Shown in pieces: positions 21,221-48,920 of a DNA stretch of 64,000 nt (position 1 is the first letter of the stretch; every line of letters starts with the position of its first letter). The notes beneath the pieces were generated by a model. The model had not been told where the DNA came from. It was given only the letters and a program-made list of their open reading frames with translations, and made no database searches. Both the position numbers and the translations under genes were made by a program. The stretch spans positions 2,914,001-2,978,000 of the forward strand of contig OZ218957.1 of assembly GCA_965112735.1 (NCBI GenBank). Reading direction: 5' to 3'. The stretch is from Phaeosaccion multiseriatum (lineage: Eukaryota; Protista; Ochrophyta, other classes).

Positions 21221-23329
21221 TCATGACGGCATGTGCAAGACTTGCGCGTGACTGCTCCCGCCACAGCAACGCCAAAAGGGCTCCTTGGCCGGCTTCTGCG
21301 GGTCCGCGGTGCTGCTGCCCCTCAGTCTGGCGCGGCGGGCAGTAGCGACACTATGAGGTCCGTGCGGAGGACGATGACAAGCTCCCTGCCACAGCCCGAC
21401 TCGAGCTTGCGCCCCCGAAACCATAAGAGGCTCCCACCCGTCCTCCGAAGGCGCTGCCCCTGCTGGTGCTGCAGATGCTGCTCCTCCCAGTGCCGCTACT
21501 GGAAGGGGGGTGCCGATGGCGGATGATGTGCATCCGCTCAAGGCGTGCAGCGCCCCGCAGGCCTGCCGCCTCACTCGCAGATCGCCAGCGTGTCTGTCGA
21601 AGGCGGTCATTACCGCAGCGAGGCAATAAGCAGCACCGCCCACCCCCTCCCTTCCTCCTCCTCCCCCTCCTCCTCTGCGCCCTCTTTTGCATCCTCCTCC
21701 TCCTCTACCTCCTCCTTCGCTGCTGAGGATGAGGAGGGCCGCACAGGCGTGCTCTTGCACCCGTGGGTGGTCCACTTGAGCGCCCATCGTCCTCGCCAAA
21801 GCCTTGAAGACGCCCACCTCTCGCAGGGCCGCACCAGCGGAGGGGCCACCACCCCCACCACCCCCACCACCACCTCCTCCTCCTCCTCCCACCCACTGCC
21901 ATCCCCTGCCAGTCCCACTCGAAGGAGTTGTCCTCGTCAGCAGGGTGCGGAGGGTCCAACACGCCTGCTCCTGCACGGCCCCGTCGTCGGCGTGAGTAGT
22001 AAGCATGCGCACCACCGCCGCACAGACCCCCGCCGCCAACAGCTTGCTGCGGTTCGTCGTAAGTCGCCCTGTGTTGTTCTCCTGGGAGGGCTGCTCGGTG
22101 GTGAGAAGGTAGCGGATGGCGCCGCAGCCCCAGCCTTGCACCAGGGGGTGCCCCGGGTGGTTGTGGAGGGCCTCCACCACCGCCTCGCAGCCTCCGACCG
22201 CGCCCAGCCGCCACGCCCTCCATGCGCCGCCATGATCGGCGTCCTCGTCCTGCTGCTTGGGTACGACCACACGCCGCCCTCCTCTTGCCCTTGCTCGAGA
22301 GATGAGGCTTGAAAATCGTCCACCAGCAGCCGCAGTGGGAGGGTCGATGGTGCCCCTGCCGCTGCCCCTGCCGCCTCCGCTGCGGTGCCCCTTGTGCTGA
22401 CTGCGGATGAGGGCCATACTGCTCTGCTGCAGCTCAGCATCTCCGGGGTGGGCGGTCATGGCCGCCACGATGGCTGAGCACGAGGCCCAGTCCCCCAGCT
22501 CCAGCCTGTTGGCGTCGTTGCCCCGCATCAGCGACCGCATGGCCCGGCAGCCCCTCTCCTGCAGGCGAGCGCAGGCCAAGTGTGTGCTCATGGCAGAAAG
22601 GACGGCTTGGCACGCCCCCGCCTCTCCAAGCTTGAGCTTGTTCGCCTTGCTGTTGCTGCTCAGACCGTGGATGGCGTCCAAGCTCTCGCCCAACAGGAAG
22701 GGGTCGGTGGAGTGGACCATCATGGAGGCGACCACAGCCTGGCAGGCCCCGGCCTCGCCCATCTCGGCTTTGATGGCGTCATTGTTCAAGATCAGACCTC
22801 GCAGCGCCGCGGTGGCTAAGAGCTGGATCCGATCATCGCTTCTATACCGCTTCATGGCAAGAGTGACAACTTGGCACACCCCTGCCCTCTTGAAGCGAAC
22901 TCCGTTGGCCGGAACGTAGCTGAGACACAGCACGGCCCCGAGAGCCTGGAGCTGCACACACACACTGTCGGGACTTGCTCGCGCAATCGCCATGAGCAAC
23001 AGACATGCCCCTGCTTCCCCGAGCTTCGCGCCATGGGCCAAGTGAGCGCTCGCCTTCCTGATGGCTCGACAAGCGCCGGCTTGACGCTGTACTCTTACGC
23101 GGGCAGCGTCATCGCCGTCATCGCCATCCCCGTCAGGCAGCAAAGTCTCCCACATGGAATCAATCAGCCTCCTCTCCTTTCCCCGTTGCCGCTGCCCATG
23201 TGCCTCAAGTCCCACCACTCTCCAGCCTGCCTCTGCTGCTCCGCCTGAGGCGGCTTCATCCCCTCTGTCCGTCCCCACAGTGGGAAGCCGACCCCAAAGC
23301 TTCTGAATCTTTTCCGTCAACTCCGACAT
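21221..23329 (-). CDS. Armadillo-repeat protein
   Basis: ~42-aa repeats such as LGEAGACQAVLSAMSTH...LQERGCRAMRSL and GVCAAVVRMLTTHADDGAVQEQACWTLRTL; single long ORF, first ATG at 23329 (MSELTEK). Confidence 0.85.
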   Translation of the reverse strand: MSELTEKIQKLWGRLPTVGTDRGDEAASGGAAEAGWRVVGLEAHGQRQRGKERRLIDSMWETLLPDGDGDDGDDAARVRVQRQAGACRAIRKASAHLAHGAKLGEAGACLLLMAIARASPDSVCVQLQALGAVLCLSYVPANGVRFKRAGVCQVVTLAMKRYRSDDRIQLLATAALRGLILNNDAIKAEMGEAGACQAVVASMMVHSTDPFLLGESLDAIHGLSSNSKANKLKLGEAGACQAVLSAMSTHLACARLQERGCRAMRSLMRGNDANRLELGDWASCSAIVAAMTAHPGDAELQQSSMALIRSQHKGHRSGGGRGSGRGTIDPPTAAAGGRFSSLISRARARGGRRVVVPKQQDEDADHGGAWRAWRLGAVGGCEAVVEALHNHPGHPLVQGWGCGAIRYLLTTEQPSQENNTGRLTTNRSKLLAAGVCAAVVRMLTTHADDGAVQEQACWTLRTLLTRTTPSSGTGRGWQWVGGGGGGGGGGGGGGGPSAGAALREVGVFKALARTMGAQVDHPRVQEHACAALLILSSEGGGRGGGGCKRGRRGGGGGGGREGVGGAAYCLAAVMTAFDRHAGDLRVRRQACGALHALSGCTSSAIGTPLPVAALGGAASAAPAGAAPSEDGWEPLMVSGAQARVGLWQGACHRPPHGPHSVATARRARLRGSSTADPQKPAKEPFWRCCGGSSHAQVLHMPS

Positions 23330-23760
23330 CGTGGCGGCTTGGGCAGTGGAGGGGTTTGGAGTCTCTGCCTGAAGCTGAGAAAGGCTTCGCCGTGAGAAGT
23401 TCCCCCCTGACCTGAGCCAGTGGCATAGTACCCTCGCCTTTTTCCAGAAAGCGTAAGGACAAAAGAGGCCCAGGAGCATACTCTTCAAGAGCCAGCATCG
23501 TCGCCTGCAGATCCCTCAATCTTCCCTTGCAGCACCCACCACCATAAAAAAAAAATAAGCCCCTCTGTATTTTCGCGTGCGAGCGAAGCGAGTGCGCTTT
23601 ATCCGATTTTCCCGCCTCTTCCTATGCTCGTATGCCTACACTTTTTGGGCTCAGAGGGTCTAGAATGAATCCCAATTGATGGTGGAGGAGTGAAGATCAC
23701 AACAAACAGAGCGAGAAAAAACAACAACAACTAACAACAACAACAACAACAACAACAAAA

Positions 23761-24723
23761 ATGGCCACTACTTCGTGTTGCACTGGAGGTATGTGAGAGA
23801 GACATTCTACGGCTTGTGCCTTCTTCTCTTCCCTCGTCGCGTCGCTGAGACTTGCCCGTCGGTTTTGTTTGCTCAGCTGCGCCCCGGGCCGACTCCTTTT
23901 TTCCGAGATAGAGACATGCTTGACTGTGGGAGCCACCTCCCCCCCTCTTCTTCGTTATTTATTTATTTTTTTATATGTGGAAACAACTTTGTGGAAAGTC
24001 GCATGAGCTTCATTGACTCACCCACTCAACATCACCGCTGCTTCTGACTCTCCCTCTCTCAACCCTCTCCCGCCTGCTGTCTCTGATACCTCCCCCTTTC
24101 TGTTTGAACGAGCAGGGACCTGCGCCTGCGGATCGGGTTGCTCCTGTACCACGGCCAGCTGCTGCACCCTCACCCCCTGCACCGCCACCGCCCCCTCCAA
24201 GGAGACCACCGATGCGGTCAAGGTAAGGCTGCGAGAGAGAGGGAAGGAAGAGCAGGGTTGGGGCTGATGTCGAGGCTAGGCTGAAGAAGAGAAGGGCTGA
24301 AGGGAGGGGAGTTTCTGCCTCTGTCGGAACGCCCGATGCGCCCCTTGCTAACCCTTTGTATTCTCTCTGTTTGGTGTGTGTATTGTCTCCTGTCTGTCAG
24401 ACCGTGTCCTGCTCCCGGAGCGATTGCGCTTGCGGAGACACCTGTGCATGCGGCCCATGTAAGTCGGTGTCAAGGATGAGAAAGAGTTCATTGCAGTGCC
24501 TGCCCGATCCAAAAAAATGGTTCTCTGACATCTCCCTCCCTCCTCCTGTTTCTTCTGTTGGGCAACCCCCCTTCTCTCCTACTTCAAAGCGGACTGCTCC
24601 CGCGGCGGAACGACTGCCAAGACCGAGGAGGCGGCTGTTTCCGGTGAATGCCCCTGGACCGACTGCACCTGCTGCGCGGATGCCTGCACGTGCGGCGCGA
24701 CGTGTAAATGCGGAACCAAGTAA
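23761..24723 (+). CDS. Metallothionein-like protein copy 1 (108 aa, 23 Cys, 4 exons)
   Basis: Exons 23761-23788, 24116-24222, 24401-24458, 24590-24723 splice in frame: MATTSCCTGGTCACGSGCSCTTASCCTLTPCTATAPSKETTDAVKTVSCSRSDCACGDTCACGPSDCSRGGTTAKTEEAAVSGECPWTDCTCCADACTCGATCKCGTK. Confidence 0.88.
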
Positions 24724-25274
24724 CGGCGACGTCGATGGTACTGTGATGGTGTATATATAGTGTGGAAGGGAGCGAGACACGAGAAGACAACAGAGTACTG
24801 TACATTGGGACTAGAAATGACCAAGAGGGCTGTGTGTAGGGAAGACTTACGGCAACTAGAGGACCATGGCAGGCAGGCGCTGTATGTTGTGAAAGTTGTA
24901 TTAAGGGTCGAGAGGGGGGGGGGGCACACCCCACTCGCTCCAAGCATGGATTTTGTACTGTAATCTGAGAATGAAACTTCTAGAACTTTATGCAATGACA
25001 AATGACAAGGACCTGGCACGAGATGGGAGCAGATGGAGACCGTTTCTGCTCAGCTCAAGAGAGGCTTGCACGCCCCCCCCACACAGGTAGGACATGACTT
25101 CACCCCAAGGAGGCAATACATGGCACAGCGTGGTTCTTTCGCTTGACTTGACCCCCAGCAGACAACAAGTCGGCCAGAGCGAGGTTCAGAATTGCCCACC
25201 TCATCAGCCAACTCACTCACTCACGCTCTCATGGCTGGTCCCAAAAAAGAGATTCTGGCGCGGCTGGCTGAGAC

Positions 25275-25360
25275 TGTTTCAACCCCTGATGCACTATCCG
25301 CTATCCGCTATCGCCGGCGCCAGGATAGCGCGTTATCGGGCCCCCCGGGGCCCGATAGGG
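25275..25360. mobile_element. Degenerate/truncated relative of the 48601-48815 MITE
   Basis: tgtttcaacccctgatgcactatccgctatccgctatcgcc matches the MITE left end tgtcgacccctgacgcactatccgctatccgctatcgcc. No intact right TIR seen. Confidence 0.7.
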
Positions 25361-25810
25361 GGGCTTTTGGTACACAGCACGGCACACCTCTCTCACACAC
25401 ACACACCTGTCGGCTTGCTCCGCAATCGTCATGGGCAAGCCTTGCAGCAGCCAAGCAGCACAGGGAGACGGAAAAAATTCTTCCTTTTCCTCTCCCCTGA
25501 AACTGCATTCTCATGTTTTCCCGCCAAGACCCCCCCCCCCCTGCAACAAGGTAAGGGCAGACTGTCTGGGACGCTTTATACATCGCCATCACCATCATTA
25601 CCCACAACAAAAGAGAAGGACGGTTGAGGATGGGAGGTATCCTACCCGTGGTAGGAAGGGGAGGGGAGATCGGGCCCGTGCATACATCTTTCCATTTGCT
25701 CGTATGCCTGTCCCCATGTTCTAGACTGTTGAGGAGGGATCACAAACACACACACAGAGCGAGAAAAAACAACAGCAACAACAACAACAACAACAACAGC
25801 AACAACAAAA

Positions 25811-26947
25811 ATGGCCACTACTTCGTGCTGCACTGGAGGTATGTGAGAGAGACATTCTACGGCTTGTGCCTTCTTCTCTTCCCTCGTCGCGTCGCTGGGA
25901 CTTGCCCGTCGGTTTTGTTTCCTCAGCTGCGCCCCGGGCCGACTCCTTTTTCCGAGATAGAGACATGCTTGACTGCGGGAGACACCTCTTCTACACACCC
26001 CACGACTCTCCTTCTTCTCGGAAGAGAGGGCTCAGGAAACCGAGGAAGTGGCATGACTGTGCCATTCCACCCTTCGGAAAAAGTAGAATGTACTACTAGA
26101 GGGGCCCCTACTAGAGCTCTGCTGTCTGCTTGCTGCTGCTGTTCACTCTTGTCGTCAGAAGAGAGGCATGGTCGACTGTGAGCCACCTCCCCCCCCTCCG
26201 CCACCCCTGTCCTCCAAACAAAAACTCACATGAACTTCAATATGACTCATCCTTTCCCGCCGCCTCCTCTCTCTCTTGCCTCCCCTTTTTCTGTGAACGA
26301 GCAGGGACCTGCGCCTGCGGATCGGGTTGCTCCTGTACCACGGCCAGCTGCTGCACCCGCACCCCCTGCACCGCCACCCCCTCCAAGGAGGCCATTGATG
26401 CGGGCACGGTAAGAGAGAGAGGGAAGGAAAGAGCAGAAGAAGGGTTGGGGCTGTTGTTGAGGTAGCTGAAGGAGACAAGGGCTGAAGGGAGGGGAGTTTC
26501 TGCCTCTGTCGGAACGCCCGATGCCCGATGGCACCAAATGCCTAGCTATGCGCCCCTTCCTTACCCTTGTATTCTGTCTCTCTTTTTTTTGTCTCCTGTC
26601 TGTCAGACCGAGTCGTGCTCCTCTACCGATTGCGCTTGCGGAGACACCTGTGCATGCGGCCCATGTAAGTCGGTGTCAAGGATGAGAAGCGAAAGAGTTC
26701 ATTGCAGCCAGTGCCTGCCCGATCACCGCTCAATCGCATTCTGACATCTCCCTCCCTCCTCCTGTTTCTTCTGTTGGGCAACCCCCCCCTTCTCTCCTAC
26801 TTCAAAGCGGCCTGCTCCCGCGGCGGAACGACTGCCAAGACCGAGGAGGCGGCGGTTTCCGGTGAATGCCCCTGGACCGACTGCACCTGCTGCACGGGTG
26901 CCTGCACGTGCGGCGCGACGTGTAAATGCGGAACCACCACCAAGTAA
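25811..26947 (+). CDS. Metallothionein-like protein copy 2 (109 aa, 23 Cys, 4 exons)
   Basis: Exons 25811-25838, 26305-26408, 26607-26664, 26808-26947 with the same intron phases as copy 1; ends ECPWTDCTCCTGACTCGATCKCGTTTK. Confidence 0.88.
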
Positions 26948-27594
26948 CGGCGACATAATGGAAGGGAAGGGATTGTGATGACGCATGTACAGTGTGAAAG
27001 GGAGTGAGAAAAGAAGAAAATAGAGTACTGTACATTAGGGAAAATATTAGGAGAGGAGGAGGAGATCACCGCAGAACCTTGCCTCTGACTTCCTTCCTTC
27101 CTTCCCCCTCCCCCGAGGATTTTGTACTAAAAATCTGAGAATGAAGCTCGAAATTTTCCCCCTTTTTAGAGACGGTTACTGCCGTGCACAAGAGAGGCTT
27201 GCACGCCCCCCCCACACAGGAAGGACATGACTTCACCCCAAGGAGGCAATACGTGGCAACACAACGGGGTATCACTTGACTGCTCCTTCCGACCATCCAC
27301 ACTTCCCTACTGTCCCCTGAAACTGAAACTGTAAGTATTTTCCCGCCAGGCAGGAACCAGCACATCTGATGACAATAGAGACTGCGACGCTTTACAGACC
27401 CGTCTCCTCCACCCCCCGGACCCTTTTTTCCCCTATATTCACTGTTACTATTTCCAAAAAGGGGGAGGTTGGGTTCGATGCGTAGGTCCATCTAGTGCAT
27501 ACTTTTCTTCCATATGCTTTCTCGAGGTCCCTTCCACCACACCATACCTTCAACGCTTCGAGAAGGAAGAGAAAGGAAGAACGAGGAAAACACC

Positions 27595-28653
27595 ATGGCG
27601 ACTACTTCTTCGTGCTGCTCTGGAGGTGTGTGAGAGTGCACTTGGCCGTGGTCCGTTTTGTTTCGGTTTTTGTTGCTTGTTTGTTGCTGTTGTTGCTGTT
27701 TTGCTATAGCTCCGCAGCCCTCTTTACAGGCATGGCTGTCTGCGGGAGCCACCTCCCCCCCCCCCCTTCTGTCTCTCCTCGGAAGGGTCTTATCGTAAGA
27801 GAGGTCTCGTCGCAGCTCAGGAAATGTCATCCCCCCAATCACTTAACTCTCTGGGGACCCCAAACTAACGCGGCTCCTGCTCGCCCTGTCCCGGCTGCTG
27901 TCTCTGGTACCTCCCCCTCTCTATTGGACGAGAAGGTACCTGCTCCTGCGGACCGGGTTGCGCCTGTACCTCGACGAGCTGCTGCACCCCCTCGAAGGAG
28001 GCTATCGATGCCGTGAAGGTAAGGCTGTAGCTTGAAAGAGAGAAGGGGAGGGGTCCCTCCTATGTACTCACTGTTGTGTCTCCCTCCCTGCCACTCCCTG
28101 TCCTCGTCTGTGTTGCCTTCTCTCGCTCGTTTGTGTTTTTCTTTTCTCTTCTCTTCTCTCCTAATCCCTGCCATCCTCTCTTCCGTGTTGTTTCCTCTCT
28201 GCTGGTCTGTCTCTGTGTCTGTGTTGCTCTCTGTCGAGCAGGCCACGTCCTGCCCCTGGACCGACTGCCCTTGCGGAGGCACCTGCGGATGCGGCTCAAG
28301 TAAGGCGAGGCGGTCCTGAGAGAGAGAGACAGAAAAGAGGAGCTCACGATGACCACCCCTTCACAGCAAACACGCTCAATCTCAATCCTGACACCCCCCT
28401 CCTCCTCCCCCTCCTACTACTGCCCCTCCTTCCCCCCCCTCCTTGCTCTGTCTTGTCGCCCACCACCCCCCAACCAGCCTGCTCCTGCGGCGGAAAGACT
28501 GCCAAGACCGACGAGCAGTGGACCGCCCTGGCGAAGGAGGGCACGGCGGAGAGGGACAACTCCGGTGAATGCCCGTGGGCCGACTGCACCTGCTGTAAGG
28601 AGGGCGTCTGCAAGTGCGGCTCGGCGTGCAAGTGCGGCACCACCCCCAAGTAG
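27595..28653 (+). CDS. Metallothionein-like protein copy 3 (115 aa, 23 Cys, 4 exons)
   Basis: Exons 27595-27625, 27936-28018, 28242-28299, 28478-28653: MATTSSCCSGGTCSCGPGCACTSTSCCTPSKEAIDAVKATSCPWTDCPCGGTCGCGSTCSCGGKTAKTDEQWTALAKEGTAERDNSGECPWADCTCCKEGVCKCGSACKCGTTPK. Confidence 0.88.
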
Positions 28654-30248
28654 TACGAGTGGCATGGCGGCGCCACCACAACGACACCACAACGACGCCA
28701 CCACAACGACAAGCAATGGCAACAGTGTGGTGTGGTGTGGTGTGTGGTGATAGTGTGTATGTGTGTGTTCCATGGCAAGCGGGAGCGAGACACCAGTCAT
28801 GTCCAAAGAGGTGCGCTGAGGAGTTCCTCCTGTACATTAGGACTGGGCTCGGCTCTCTGTCTGGGTGTGTGTCTCTCTCCCTCTTTTTAGCTGTGTGAGT
28901 CAAAGGACCGAGACGGAGGAGGAGGAGAGAAGACTCTAGCTCGGGCTGTGGGTGAGGAATTATTATGGCAAACGAGCGTGTAGTGAGGTAGGTGAAATGG
29001 AAGCATATGAGCCAGGTGGCATCGGGAGAGAAAGAAGAGTATTGGGAGGCAGGAGGGCGGGAGGCGCTGAGGAGGCTGGAAGGAGACATGGATGCCTCCA
29101 TATGCCTCCACTTATGATATTTTGGGGGGTGGAGAGGGGAGACAGGCATGTAATCCTTCTTGCGTTGTTGTAGGGGAGGCAGGCACTTACCATAAAAGAG
29201 TCTCTCTTTTGGGCTTTGGTGCTCGCTCCCTCCTGACACATGACATGGATTTGTACTCTAAGCTGAGAATGAAGCTCAGAAATCAGGTATCAATAATAAA
29301 TTCAATCTAGACATCGATATCCCATCAGTGCTCAGTCCACCCACGACTTTCCCACGATGCGTCGGTCGACGGCCCCCATCCTCCCCTCTTCGCCCCTCCA
29401 TTCCCGCTGCACTCGAGTGATGTGGGGTGTGTGGCCGTGGTAAATGGCAGCAGATGGATACCTTGGGCGGGAAGGAGTGTGCTTGCCTCTCTGCACAGCA
29501 CAGCAGAGGCTTGCACGCCCCTCCCCTCCCCACAGCCTCGGCCACTTGTAAGACACAGCATGACTTCCACCCCCCAAAAGTGCATGACTTTGCCCACATG
29601 GCATGGCATGAGTTGCCCCAAGTCGACAGGTCGGTCGGACCGAAGGCCCGCCTGACTCACTCACTCACGGTCTCGCACACCCAAGAGCCAGGAGAGGGAG
29701 ACTCGCACCTGTAGAAGCCCGTGTGTGTGTGTGTGTGTGTGTGTGTGGAGAGCGGTGTCTGGCAATACTGCCCCCCCCCCCCCCCCCATAGCCCCCCGGT
29801 GCCATTCCTCCGTCGTGACTTCCGTGTGTATGGCTCATGGGCTTCACTCGGCAGTGCGATGCGAATGCAATCGCTGACTGCCACACCTCGCGGGGAGAGC
29901 CTCCTCCCTCCCCCCTCGTCACTGCACTCGACAAAAGCGAATCTCTCAACGGCAAGTGACAAGTGCTCAACTGTCCCTGGCCGGTGATGCTGCATGTACA
30001 GCAGGCAGAATGGCACCAGGTCACGGAGGCTACTCCACCCACGCCGCCGCCGCCCCCGAGGAGAGAGAGGCGAGACACGCTGCTGCTCGACCGACCGGGC
30101 CCAAGCCCAAGCAGCAAGCACCACCGGCATCCACGGCCCGTGCATTGCTGGGGACAGACAATCAATCGCCAGTCCCTTGCACACGCCCACTGCTTGACCG
30201 GTTGTTCATCTCCGACGGGACTCACAAATCACAAATGGCGCCTACGAC

Positions 30249-30387
30249 TCACAAAGGAGCGAGGTAGGTGGCAAGCCGCTGGAAATAGCCCAAGTCCCCC
30301 TGAGACCACCTTCCCTCGCCGGGCAGCGCCGTCCCCACAAGCAGGAGCACGGGAGGAGGGGCCTCTACAGTATTGCCCACCCTTCTA

Positions 30388-30424
<37 letters not shown>

Positions 30425-31610
30425 TGTTGTTGTTGCTGCGCACTGTTCCCATGACGACCACTCCTCCCTTACACGAGTCTGGTAGAAATCTCATCGCTGC
30501 TGCAGATACACCTGCATCAGCAGTTGGTGATACAGCAGCAGCAGCGGACGTGACCACAAGAGGAGCGCCTCCGCTAGCCTGCATGGCAGCACTGGACAGA
30601 ACATTGATGGCCGCAGAAGCAGCTGCCTTCTCCTCCTCCTCCTCCACCTCCTCCGCCTCTGATGATAAAGACGAAGACACCAGCCCAAGCCGAGCCAGCA
30701 CTTTCCCCCGGCGTAGCAGCACCACGGAGCAGGCCGGCGTGAGCTGAAGGATGACGTCAGCGGCCCAGCGGATTCTCTCCTCGCCGGCGGCGGACACGTC
30801 ACTTCGATTAGGAGTGACCCAAGCTGCCAGCCCTGCCGTCTCCTCCGCAGCGGCCATTTGCTCCGGAGAGGCAGACGCTACAGAAGCCGCTCGCTCGGCC
30901 ACCGCAATGTCAGTCTGTCGGTCAACAACTTTAGGGGCCGAGAGGGGGCGGCGAGGGAGAGGAAGAGAGAGGGACAGAGAGGGACAGATAGGACAGATGG
31001 GTTAGCCCCTGTCTGTGGAGAAGCGGCAGCGTTCTAAGTGGCCAAGCCCCCTCCAGCGAAGTCATAGACCTGGAGGGGGTGATCGAAGCGCCACGTCCAA
31101 TCCACTGCTTTTATTGAAACTGTACTCGATAAGCTCTGACGCAGTGACAACAAGTACCCCACCTGATTGGAGAATCAGCACCAGTCCCGCCGCGGCCCCC
31201 ACCGCCTCGCTAGTAAGCTGACTCGTCCCCACATCGTAGCCCGGAAACCGATTGATGACGAGGAGGGCGAAGATGAGGAGCCCCATCAGGAGTCGCAGGC
31301 GGTATCCTTCGAGGCCCGGCACGAAGAAGCCCCCTCCTCTCTCAATCGCCGCAGATGGCCGCCTGTAGTAGCTGCCGAGATTCTTGCGAGGGACACTCGA
31401 GGGAGGACCGCTAACACTCTTGCTGCTACTGCTGCTGCTGCTGCCACTGGCCATGGCAATACTGAACCCCCTCCTCGCCGTGCTCCTGTTGCCCTCGACT
31501 TTGCTTGGATTGCAAACAGAACGGGGATACGTCGGCGGCTGGAAAGCATAGCACAAGTTTTTGCCTAGCAAGACCAGCAGCCCCACCACTCGCACAAGCC
31601 GTGGCGCCAT
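30249..31610 (-). CDS. CCB2/CCB4-family cytochrome b6f heme c_i assembly factor (more CCB2-like), plastid-targeted
   Basis: Signal peptide ending CYA-F. Core FFVPGLEGYRLRLLMGLLIFALLVINRF...SQLTSEAVG resembles, from memory, CCB2 IPG..LPR..G..LLLNHF..QLRSEALG. C-terminus VLLLVG...WSQGDLGYFQRLATYL. Exons 31610-31163 and 30928-30249 are phase-compatible. Confidence 0.7.
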
Positions 31611-48371: not shown

Positions 48372-48600
48372 TGGGTTTACAGGGCTCTTGTGTGCGTGTC
48401 GTTGTTGGTCGCTTTCGACGTCGGGGCCGGCTGAGCGTGTCGCAGAGAGGTCAGGCACGAACCCTTGAGGTGCTGCAGGATGTGGCGTCTGAGATGAGGT
48501 GAATGGGGCGGATGAAAGAGGTGTCTCTCGCCTGCCGTAAGATCTCACTGTCAGGGCGTTGGGAAGGGAGCCTGGCGACGGCCTAAACGGAGGGCCAAAC

Positions 48601-48815
48601 TGTCGACCCCTGACGCACTATCCGCTATCCGCTATCGCCCTAGCCGGCGCGCTATCCGCTATCGTTGGCGCCAGCCGGCGCGCTATCTGCTATCGCCGGC
48701 GCCAGCCGGCACGCTATCCGCTATCGCTGGCGCCAGCCGATCCGCTTTCGGCTATCGGCCGGCGGCCGATAGCGCGCTATCGAGAATGTGGGCGACAGTG
48801 CGTCAGGGGTCGACA
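48601..48815. mobile_element. 215-bp MITE with perfect 19-bp TIRs and 4-bp TSD
   Basis: TIR tgtcgacccctgacgcact (48601-48619) / agtgcgtcaggggtcgaca (48797-48815); aaac flanks both sides (48597-48600, 48816-48819); internal GCTATC repeats. Confidence 0.9.
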
Positions 48816-48920
48816 AAACTGGAGTGATATGTCTGTCATATTCGTGATCAACAATCAGATTTGATCAGGGGGAAAGCTGACAGCCCCCCAAAAAAAGGTT
48901 CTTGACGCACAGACTACCTC

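Follow-up and report, generated by a model that had tools for sequence, protein, structure and literature searches.

A tandem trio of probable three-module metallothionein genes in Phaeosaccion multiseriatum, with relatives in several algal and protist groups

In a 64,000-nucleotide stretch of the genome of the ochrophyte alga Phaeosaccion multiseriatum (assembly GCA_965112735.1, contig OZ218957.1, positions 2,914,001 to 2,978,000 of the forward strand, hereafter the window), we identify three tandem genes between positions 23761 and 28653. These appear to be functional nuclear genes encoding cytosolic, three-module polypeptides of ~11 kDa that are rich in cysteine (Cys), and their most likely function is that of metallothioneins, a reading to which we give a probability of roughly 0.7 on the evidence of the sequences and their relatives.

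All three genes lie on the plus strand, and each consists of four exons that splice to a reading frame without a stop or frameshift. Copy 1 (23761..24723, ATG to stop) is built from exons 23761-23788, 24116-24222, 24401-24458 and 24590-24723; copy 2 (25811..26947) from exons 25811-25838, 26305-26408, 26607-26664 and 26808-26947; and copy 3 (27595..28653) from exons 27595-27625, 27936-28018, 28242-28299 and 28478-28653. Their products are 108, 109 and 115 amino acids (aa) long, respectively. A sequence-only reading of this DNA had proposed three 4-exon genes with intron phases 1,0,1, products with 23 Cys each in three Cys domains, and two Cys-free linkers (PSKE..DAVK and GG(T/K)TAKT..SGE). All of these features were reproduced when we rebuilt the exon coordinates and translated them by script from window positions 23400-29100, with the Cys domains also recovered in an alignment of the wider family. 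All nine introns are of the GT...AG type, and their phases are the same in every copy. Exon lengths in copies 1/2/3 (28/28/31, 107/104/83, 58/58/58 and 134/140/176 nt) differ by multiples of three throughout, and intron lengths (327/466/310, 178/198/223 and 131/143/178) vary freely. The 58-nt exon 3, which codes for most of module 2 (24401..24458 in copy 1, 26607-26664 in copy 2 and 28242-28299 in copy 3, plus strand), had been described as invariant; this holds for its length but not for its sequence, which is 90% identical between copies 1 and 2 and 76-78% identical to copy 3. Similarly, the genes had been described as absent from the list of open reading frames (ORFs), and no whole gene is recovered there, but exon 4 of copies 2 and 3 is contained in listed pieces (26702-26947 and 28453-28653, respectively) that stop at the gene stops. 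Searching the 64-kb window with the three products using tblastn did not find a further copy.

Relatives of these genes emerged only with HMMER profile searches, a word-indexed protein search with full-length copy 1 having given no match. A profile of the three exon-4 translations (A2), used in an exhaustive HMMER search of 1.84 billion protein representatives, matched proteins P0001 (115 aa), P0002 (109 aa), P0004 (118 aa) and P0005 (194 aa), with E-values of 1.7e-11 (P0001, the best), 4.9e-06 and 2.1e-05. P0007 and P0008 were matched as well, each through a module at its C-terminal end. The sources of these matches are MMETSP transcripts, Roombia truncata, EukProt and the choanoflagellate Diaphanoeca grandis. 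Searching next with a full-length profile (A3) gave 24 proteins, with known members re-scoring at 1e-34, and homologue E-values overall range from 1e-11 to 1e-44. Transcript-derived homologues are present in two MMETSP organisms, Hemiselmis tepida (A0A7S0W5N0, 118 aa), Roombia truncata and Heterococcus (127 aa). In addition, we identified a homologue in Tribonema minus (P0011, JKP88DRAFT_350846, 125 aa), named “hypothetical protein” by NCBI and “Metallothionein” by UniRef, a partial annotated model in Chrysoparadoxa australica (P0022), and a homologue with two modules in the red alga Agarophyton chilense. Profile searching, one of the checks suggested with the original gene models, recovered proteins that share the three-module layout of the window products at 45-59% identity. 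Over the family alignment, identity between copy 3 and its three-module relatives is 46-57% (best local BLASTP, 59%), and the window genes are similar over their full length to a three-module family marked by a W-x-D-C motif, with clade support of 93/92.

The window genes share with this family both the order of its parts, i.e., module 1, linker 1, module 2, linker 2, module 3, and the motifs of the two linkers. Module 1 of the family aligns as C-x-x-W-A-D-C-x-C...C-x-C-G-x-x-C-x-C-G and is followed by linker 1, (V/I)(T/S)-x-E-x-x-x-x-x-K. Module 2 reads C-P-(W/F/Y)-x-D-C-x-C-G-x-x-C-x-C-G-x-x-C-x-C-G-G, linker 2 reads T-x-K-T-x-x-x-W... with an invariant Trp, and module 3 reads E-C-P-W-x-D-C-x-C...C-x-C-G-x-x-C-x-C-G. 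The alignment makes it plain that each of the three modules repeats a single unit, C-x(1,2)-W-x-D-C-x-C ... C-x-C-G-x-x-C-x-C-G, which contains 7 Cys in the relatives. Because the three-module type is common to cryptophyte, katablepharid, xanthophyte and Chrysoparadoxa sequences, it is not particular to Phaeosaccion; judged by this distribution, it is old and widespread and did not arise in the Phaeosaccion genome. The 7-Cys ECPWSDC module also occurs outside three-module proteins: a Diaphanoeca grandis transcript (P0008) carries two copies of it after C2H2 zinc fingers, and P0007 and P0029 carry a single module at the C-terminus of low-complexity proteins.

Gene structure in the relatives provides an independent check of the splice junctions. 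We mapped the Tribonema protein to its genome locus (L001, JAFCMP010000530.1) and re-modelled the Chrysoparadoxa gene on its own (L002, CAXMZZ020002708.1). Both genes contain a phase-1 intron immediately before the second CxC of module 1, a phase-0 intron directly after the linker-1 Lys, and a phase-1 intron within module 2. Introns 2 and 3 occupy the same alignment columns, in the same phases, in the window genes, Tribonema and Chrysoparadoxa, while intron 1 of the two relatives has the same phase as in the window genes and is sited one codon away. The exon between the last two shared introns is again 58 nt long (L001 8327-8384 in Tribonema; L002 900-957 in Chrysoparadoxa). Since this intron pattern recurs in the Tribonema and Chrysoparadoxa genes, the junctions first proposed from the Phaeosaccion sequence are independently validated. 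In the relatives, linker 2 or module 3 is interrupted by additional introns with no equivalent in the window genes. Neither end of the annotated Chrysoparadoxa model is correct, its start lying inside an intron and its stop coming too early; our six-exon re-model (L002 501-537, 778-842, 900-957, 1029-1069, 1150-1221 and 1348-1398) encodes a complete protein of 107 aa with three modules. In Tribonema, an annotated short exon (L001 9147-9182, ILFDCSGPGYS) has no counterpart in the Heterococcus transcript or in other members and may be an annotation artefact.

These comparisons bear on whether the three genes could be chance open frames in GC-rich, duplicated DNA. All that speaks for such an origin is that ORFs are generally abundant in GC-rich sequence, and the idea is refuted by homologues with E-values as low as those given above and by introns conserved in other genomes, so that we give it almost no weight. 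Conservation across genomes confirmed that the three genes are real rather than chance ORFs.

Comparison of the copies with each other showed a clear coding signal. Exons are 63-84% identical to those of copy 3, whereas introns are 46-57% identical, about the level of unrelated sequence in global alignment. GC content at third codon positions is 0.76-0.83, against 0.50-0.56 for intron GC. All 22 aligned Cys columns are invariant (22/22), whereas copies 1 and 3 differ at 30 of the 77 non-Cys positions (39%); were Cys to change at the non-Cys rate, all 22 would be retained with a probability of ~2e-5. This pattern of substitution shows purifying selection on every Cys. The ratio of nonsynonymous to synonymous substitution rates (dN/dS) of copies 1 and 2 to copy 3 is 0.48-0.54, with a synonymous divergence (dS) of 0.33.

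The composition of the products is that of metallothioneins. They are acidic and small (10.5, 10.5 and 11.4 kDa), Cys makes up 20-21% of residues and nearly all of it occurs as CxC or CC, and there is no His, no Phe or Tyr, and one to three Trp. Hydrophobic or aromatic residues number four to eight in total, with one or two hydrophobic residues among the first 30 and no signal peptide. Given this near lack of hydrophobic residues, the products cannot form a hydrophobic core, and the expected location is the reducing cytosol; Cys-rich products with neither a core nor a signal are the classical metallothionein situation. Small size and high Cys content are also typical of disulfide-knotted peptides, and the genes might instead encode secreted, defensin- or toxin-like disulfide-rich peptides. 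We consider this very improbable, since the N-terminus (MATTSCC...) has no signal peptide or hydrophobic stretch, disulfide scaffolds do not typically have contiguous CxC and CC pairs or an odd number of Cys (here 23), and the homologues too begin directly with the first module. As metallothioneins, the products would bind Zn(II), Cd(II) or Cu(I) through their 23 thiolates (8-9 + 6-7 + 8 per module), with one thiolate cluster per module. The two short linkers that connect the modules are conserved in the relatives, where helices are predicted for them, and the role of the proteins would be metal buffering or detoxification. Metallothionein domains of 6 to 9 Cys bind two to three divalent ions each, and by analogy our guess would be 6-9 divalent ions per protein. 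For Phaeosaccion itself we infer metal binding, its stoichiometry, metal preference and transcription.

Several observations weigh against a metallothionein function. The name would rest on composition and on homology to proteins that are themselves uncharacterised, as are all the Tribonema-type relatives, and our literature search did not find a metal-binding test of any family member, nor a paper on three-module algal metallothioneins or one printing the family motifs. No Pfam metallothionein model (PF00131, PF01439, PF02067, PF02068 and others) matched the window proteins, their exon pieces or ten homologues at threshold; the sole sub-threshold Pfam match among the homologues, to Metallothio_5 (best score 17.2 bits, cut-off 25), is a weak lead in favour of a metallothionein. 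Searches of PDB sequences with a single protein and with the family profile found no similar solved metallothionein. Matches to PKC eta and Mediator 16 in those searches were rejected as chance. An AlphaFold model of the homologue P0001 (pLDDT 73.5, pTM 0.54), in which both linkers are helical, gave no fold match in PDB (Foldseek; VIA-align wide, best Z 2.7) or in the Swiss-Prot set of the AlphaFold database (AFDB). Using language-model features of copy 3 exon 4, the named clusters nearby are metallothioneins of several families (0.69-0.80), with unnamed clusters at or near the top, ahead of the named metallothioneins; this is a second weak lead in favour, and the UniRef name of the Tribonema protein is a third. 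Furthermore, linkers that are conserved and predicted to be helical, with an invariant Trp in linker 2, suggest more order than in classical metallothioneins, and another role could be possible.

Such a role might be that of a metallochaperone, of a sensor of metal or redox state, or of a structured adaptor that depends on Zn, the Cys modules forming structural or sensing clusters; the trio would still be real genes of the family but would serve mainly for something other than bulk metal buffering. The conservation across supergroups of linkers predicted to be helical, the fusion of a single module or a pair to other proteins (for example, the Diaphanoeca grandis zinc-finger protein P0008), and the lack of detectable similarity to any characterised metallothionein are all in keeping with this explanation. 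We nevertheless regard it as unlikely, if the most serious of those we weighed. Copies 1 and 2 have lost most of the linker-2 helix together with its Trp while keeping every Cys, which argues that selection here keeps thiolates, not helices. In addition, tandem amplification and extra Cys (23, against 20-22 in the three-module relatives) fit selection for dosage or capacity, which is typical of metallothioneins.

Two further points that count against functional metallothionein genes concern expression and constraint. The public runs that contain the locus are all genomic DNA, and their contigs cross the introns at flat depth with no intron-skipping joints; because of this, the support for the splice junctions comes from conservation alone. 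Between copies 1 and 2, dN/dS is 0.82 (dS 0.064), a value that may indicate relaxed constraint on one of them. Both points, together with a high-copy repeat in the spacer upstream of copy 2, would be expected if one or more copies were a silent or decaying duplicate. Against this, the trio retains three intact frames, nine canonical introns and all its Cys, has in-frame indels only, and has an upstream block and a 3′ untranslated region (3′UTR) motif common to all three copies; we therefore judge silencing or decay of a copy to be improbable.

Our analysis of the history of the trio supported a recent origin for copies 1 and 2 and an older one for copy 3, as had been proposed from the sequence: dS is 0.064 between the first two against 0.33 to copy 3, and introns are 56-82% alignable against 46-57%, which is near random. 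Copies 1 and 2 are 89% identical at the protein level, and the unit duplicated to form them takes in ~140 nt of sequence before the ATG and ~420 nt after the stop. In the tree, the three copies form a clade (100/98) in which copies 1 and 2 are sisters (100/99); the branch leading to copy 3 is very short (0.06), whereas copies 1 and 2 share a long stem (0.52). CPWTDC in module 2 is retained by copy 3, as is the QW segment of the linker-2 helix; in copies 1 and 2, module 2 has lost its Trp and its last Cys, and linker 2 is shorter by 12 residues. On tree and alignment, copy 3 is thus ancestral-like, and copies 1 and 2 are recent and fast-evolving sisters, whose lineage would have evolved rapidly from a form like that of copy 3 (stem 0.52 against 0.06). 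These changes suggest either divergence in metal specificity or simply added dosage. The proposal that a three-domain algal metallothionein type had been expanded by tandem duplication was likewise supported, with the tandem trio being local; the three-module type itself, however, is widespread.

In all three copies the first module has been remodelled. The Tribonema protein and its transcript-derived relatives have the same module order and the same two linkers as the window genes, but where the Tribonema-type relatives start with C-x-x-W-A-D-C-x-C, the window proteins begin MATT(S)SCC, without the WAD, and have an added SCCT(LTPC) tail after module 1. None of the three copies therefore carries the N-terminal C-x-x-W-A-D-C-x-C of the family, a loss that is a derived state within the family and no ground for excluding them from it. 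Module 3 of the window genes has CTCC where the relatives have C-S-C-K. Taken from these alignments, the local novelties are the tandem triplication and the remodelled first module, in which the WAD was lost and CC pairs were gained. Tribonema, in contrast to the tandem array of the window, has a single family gene within 8 kb either side, and a single gene is also present in the Agarophyton locus examined. An assembled contig from a public run (Logan SRR23274491) contains two intronless members, P0028 and P0017, in tandem on one strand (327-647 and 1796-2062), and tandem duplication therefore recurs within the three-module family.

Two side observations concern sequence exchange and copy number at the locus. 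At the 3′ end of intron 1, copy 1 (24063-24107) and copy 3 (27884-27928) share 87% identity, with only 60% identity to copy 2, and this likeness could be a conserved intronic element or a trace of gene conversion. Genomic contigs at approximately single-copy depth join position 26956 to 24735 (19 letters between) and 24829 to 28916 (16 letters between), and the contigs with these alternative joints carry three single-nucleotide polymorphisms (24765, 24781 and 24783). The joints imply either an additional copy or a second haplotype, in which the coding sequence ends like that of copy 2, the 3′UTR resembles that of copy 1 and copy 3 is missing; copy number may thus differ between haplotypes.

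Examination of the flanks of the genes identified shared elements. A (CAA)n-rich leader adjoins the ATG of copy 1 (23713..23760) and copy 2 (~25770-25810) on the plus strand, as seen by reading the sequence and aligning the upstream regions, and is not present in copy 3; leaders of this type lack structure and in some systems enhance translation. The same upstream alignment revealed a promoter-proximal block, CTTCCTATGCTCGTATGCCT, ~125 nt before the copy 1 ATG (23621..23640, plus strand), also present in copy 2 (~25691-25711) and partly in copy 3 (~27509-27530), which is a candidate core promoter or regulatory element. One 3′UTR motif, CTGTACATTRGG, is present per copy on the plus strand (24798..24809, 27028-27039 and 28830-28841); these are its only three matches in the 64-kb window, where 0.02 are expected, and it is a candidate 3′-end processing or regulatory element. 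The spacer between copies 1 and 2 contains, outside the genes, the very high-copy repeat mentioned above (25133..25506), recognised from contig depth in the genomic runs (14,000-96,000, against ~100-500 around it). This repeat holds GCTATC subrepeats and a palindrome, GGGCCCCCCGGGGCCC, and probably belongs to the same family, resembling miniature inverted-repeat transposable elements, as an element at 48597-48819.

Of the neighbouring genes, an ARM-repeat gene upstream of the trio (21221-23488, minus strand) has its best named matches in Tribonema minus and Phaeothamnion confervicola, at 25-27% identity. An ORF at 30249-30902 (minus strand) has a CCB2/CCB4-like domain (cytochrome b6f cofactor assembly) with an E-value of 2e-05, just below the Pfam cut-off, which fits a photosynthetic host. 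Taken with the matches of the ARM-repeat gene, it points to a photosynthetic ochrophyte. No metal transporter or other metal-related gene was found near the trio, and Rfam and tRNA scans of the region gave no match.

Named metallothioneins offer several points of comparison, the first of them algal. The metallothionein of Fucus vesiculosus was reportedly characterised by Morris et al. 1999; its N-terminal 7-Cys domain presumably has the form C-x-x-W-x-D-C-x-C...CxCGxxCxCG, which we treat as a lead only. The sequence-only reading had described this protein as having two Cys domains, in agreement with the published account of a characterised metal binder with 67 aa, 16 Cys and two domains separated by a 14-residue Cys-free linker (PMC6981760). 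It resembles the window proteins in being small, algal and CxC-rich, with Cys domains split by a long Cys-free linker, but differs from them in its two domains, 16 Cys and ~67 aa, and in a different second domain, against three modules, 23 Cys and 108-115 aa in the window proteins. Brown and red seaweeds are stated to have a single metallothionein gene (PMC6981760), and in Ectocarpus the metallothionein transcript rises under copper (PMC5907779). The Ectocarpus quantitative PCR primers (PMC5907779) encode CGSSCS and DNCNCG, which is compatible with the family and not decisive.

Metallothioneins of plants and animals provide further comparisons. By language-model features, the named clusters nearest to the Tribonema homologue are plant type 4 metallothioneins (PF02068), at 0.82-0.83. 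Plant type 4 (Ec, or PEC) proteins have three Cys-rich regions. In plant metallothioneins the Cys-rich regions are split by Cys-free linkers, of ~15 residues in type 4 (PMC6981760). Type 4 proteins, however, use His as well as Cys, whereas the window proteins contain no His and have no match to the corresponding model, and the likeness is probably convergent. The multi-domain metallothioneins of gastropods, for example the three-domain protein of Littorina and the multi-domain protein of Alinda, are reported to have grown by repetition of one Cys domain (PMC7826182, PMC7084494). They share modular repetition with the window proteins but are an unrelated animal sequence family, with 9-Cys domains and short linkers.

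Metallothionein families are normally lineage-restricted. A bolder possibility, to which we give somewhat less than even odds, is that the genes described here belong to an undescribed and unusually ancient metallothionein family, defined by the 7-Cys W-x-D-C module, structured helical linkers and a conserved gene structure, and common to red algae and to lineages with, or allied to those with, red-derived plastids (cryptophytes, katablepharids and ochrophytes). Such a family might have spread by endosymbiotic gene transfer, with its module recruited elsewhere, as in the choanoflagellate C2H2 zinc-finger protein, possibly as a metal sensor. If this is true, a metallothionein family that spans supergroups would be unusual.

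Algal metallothioneins are poorly known, and the literature we searched contains one characterised brown-algal protein, with two domains. The locus described here shows that genes of a three-module type form a tandem array of at least three in an ochrophyte alga, and the three-module type and its intron pattern extend across several algal and protist groups in which we found neither a Pfam model nor a functional study. Genes of this kind are overlooked or mis-modelled by ORF-based or automatic annotation. Within the trio, copy 3, which is ancestral-like, and copies 1 and 2, which are derived and have extra CC pairs, a lost Trp and a shortened linker, would provide a natural series in which Cys number and linker structure can be related to metal capacity and specificity.

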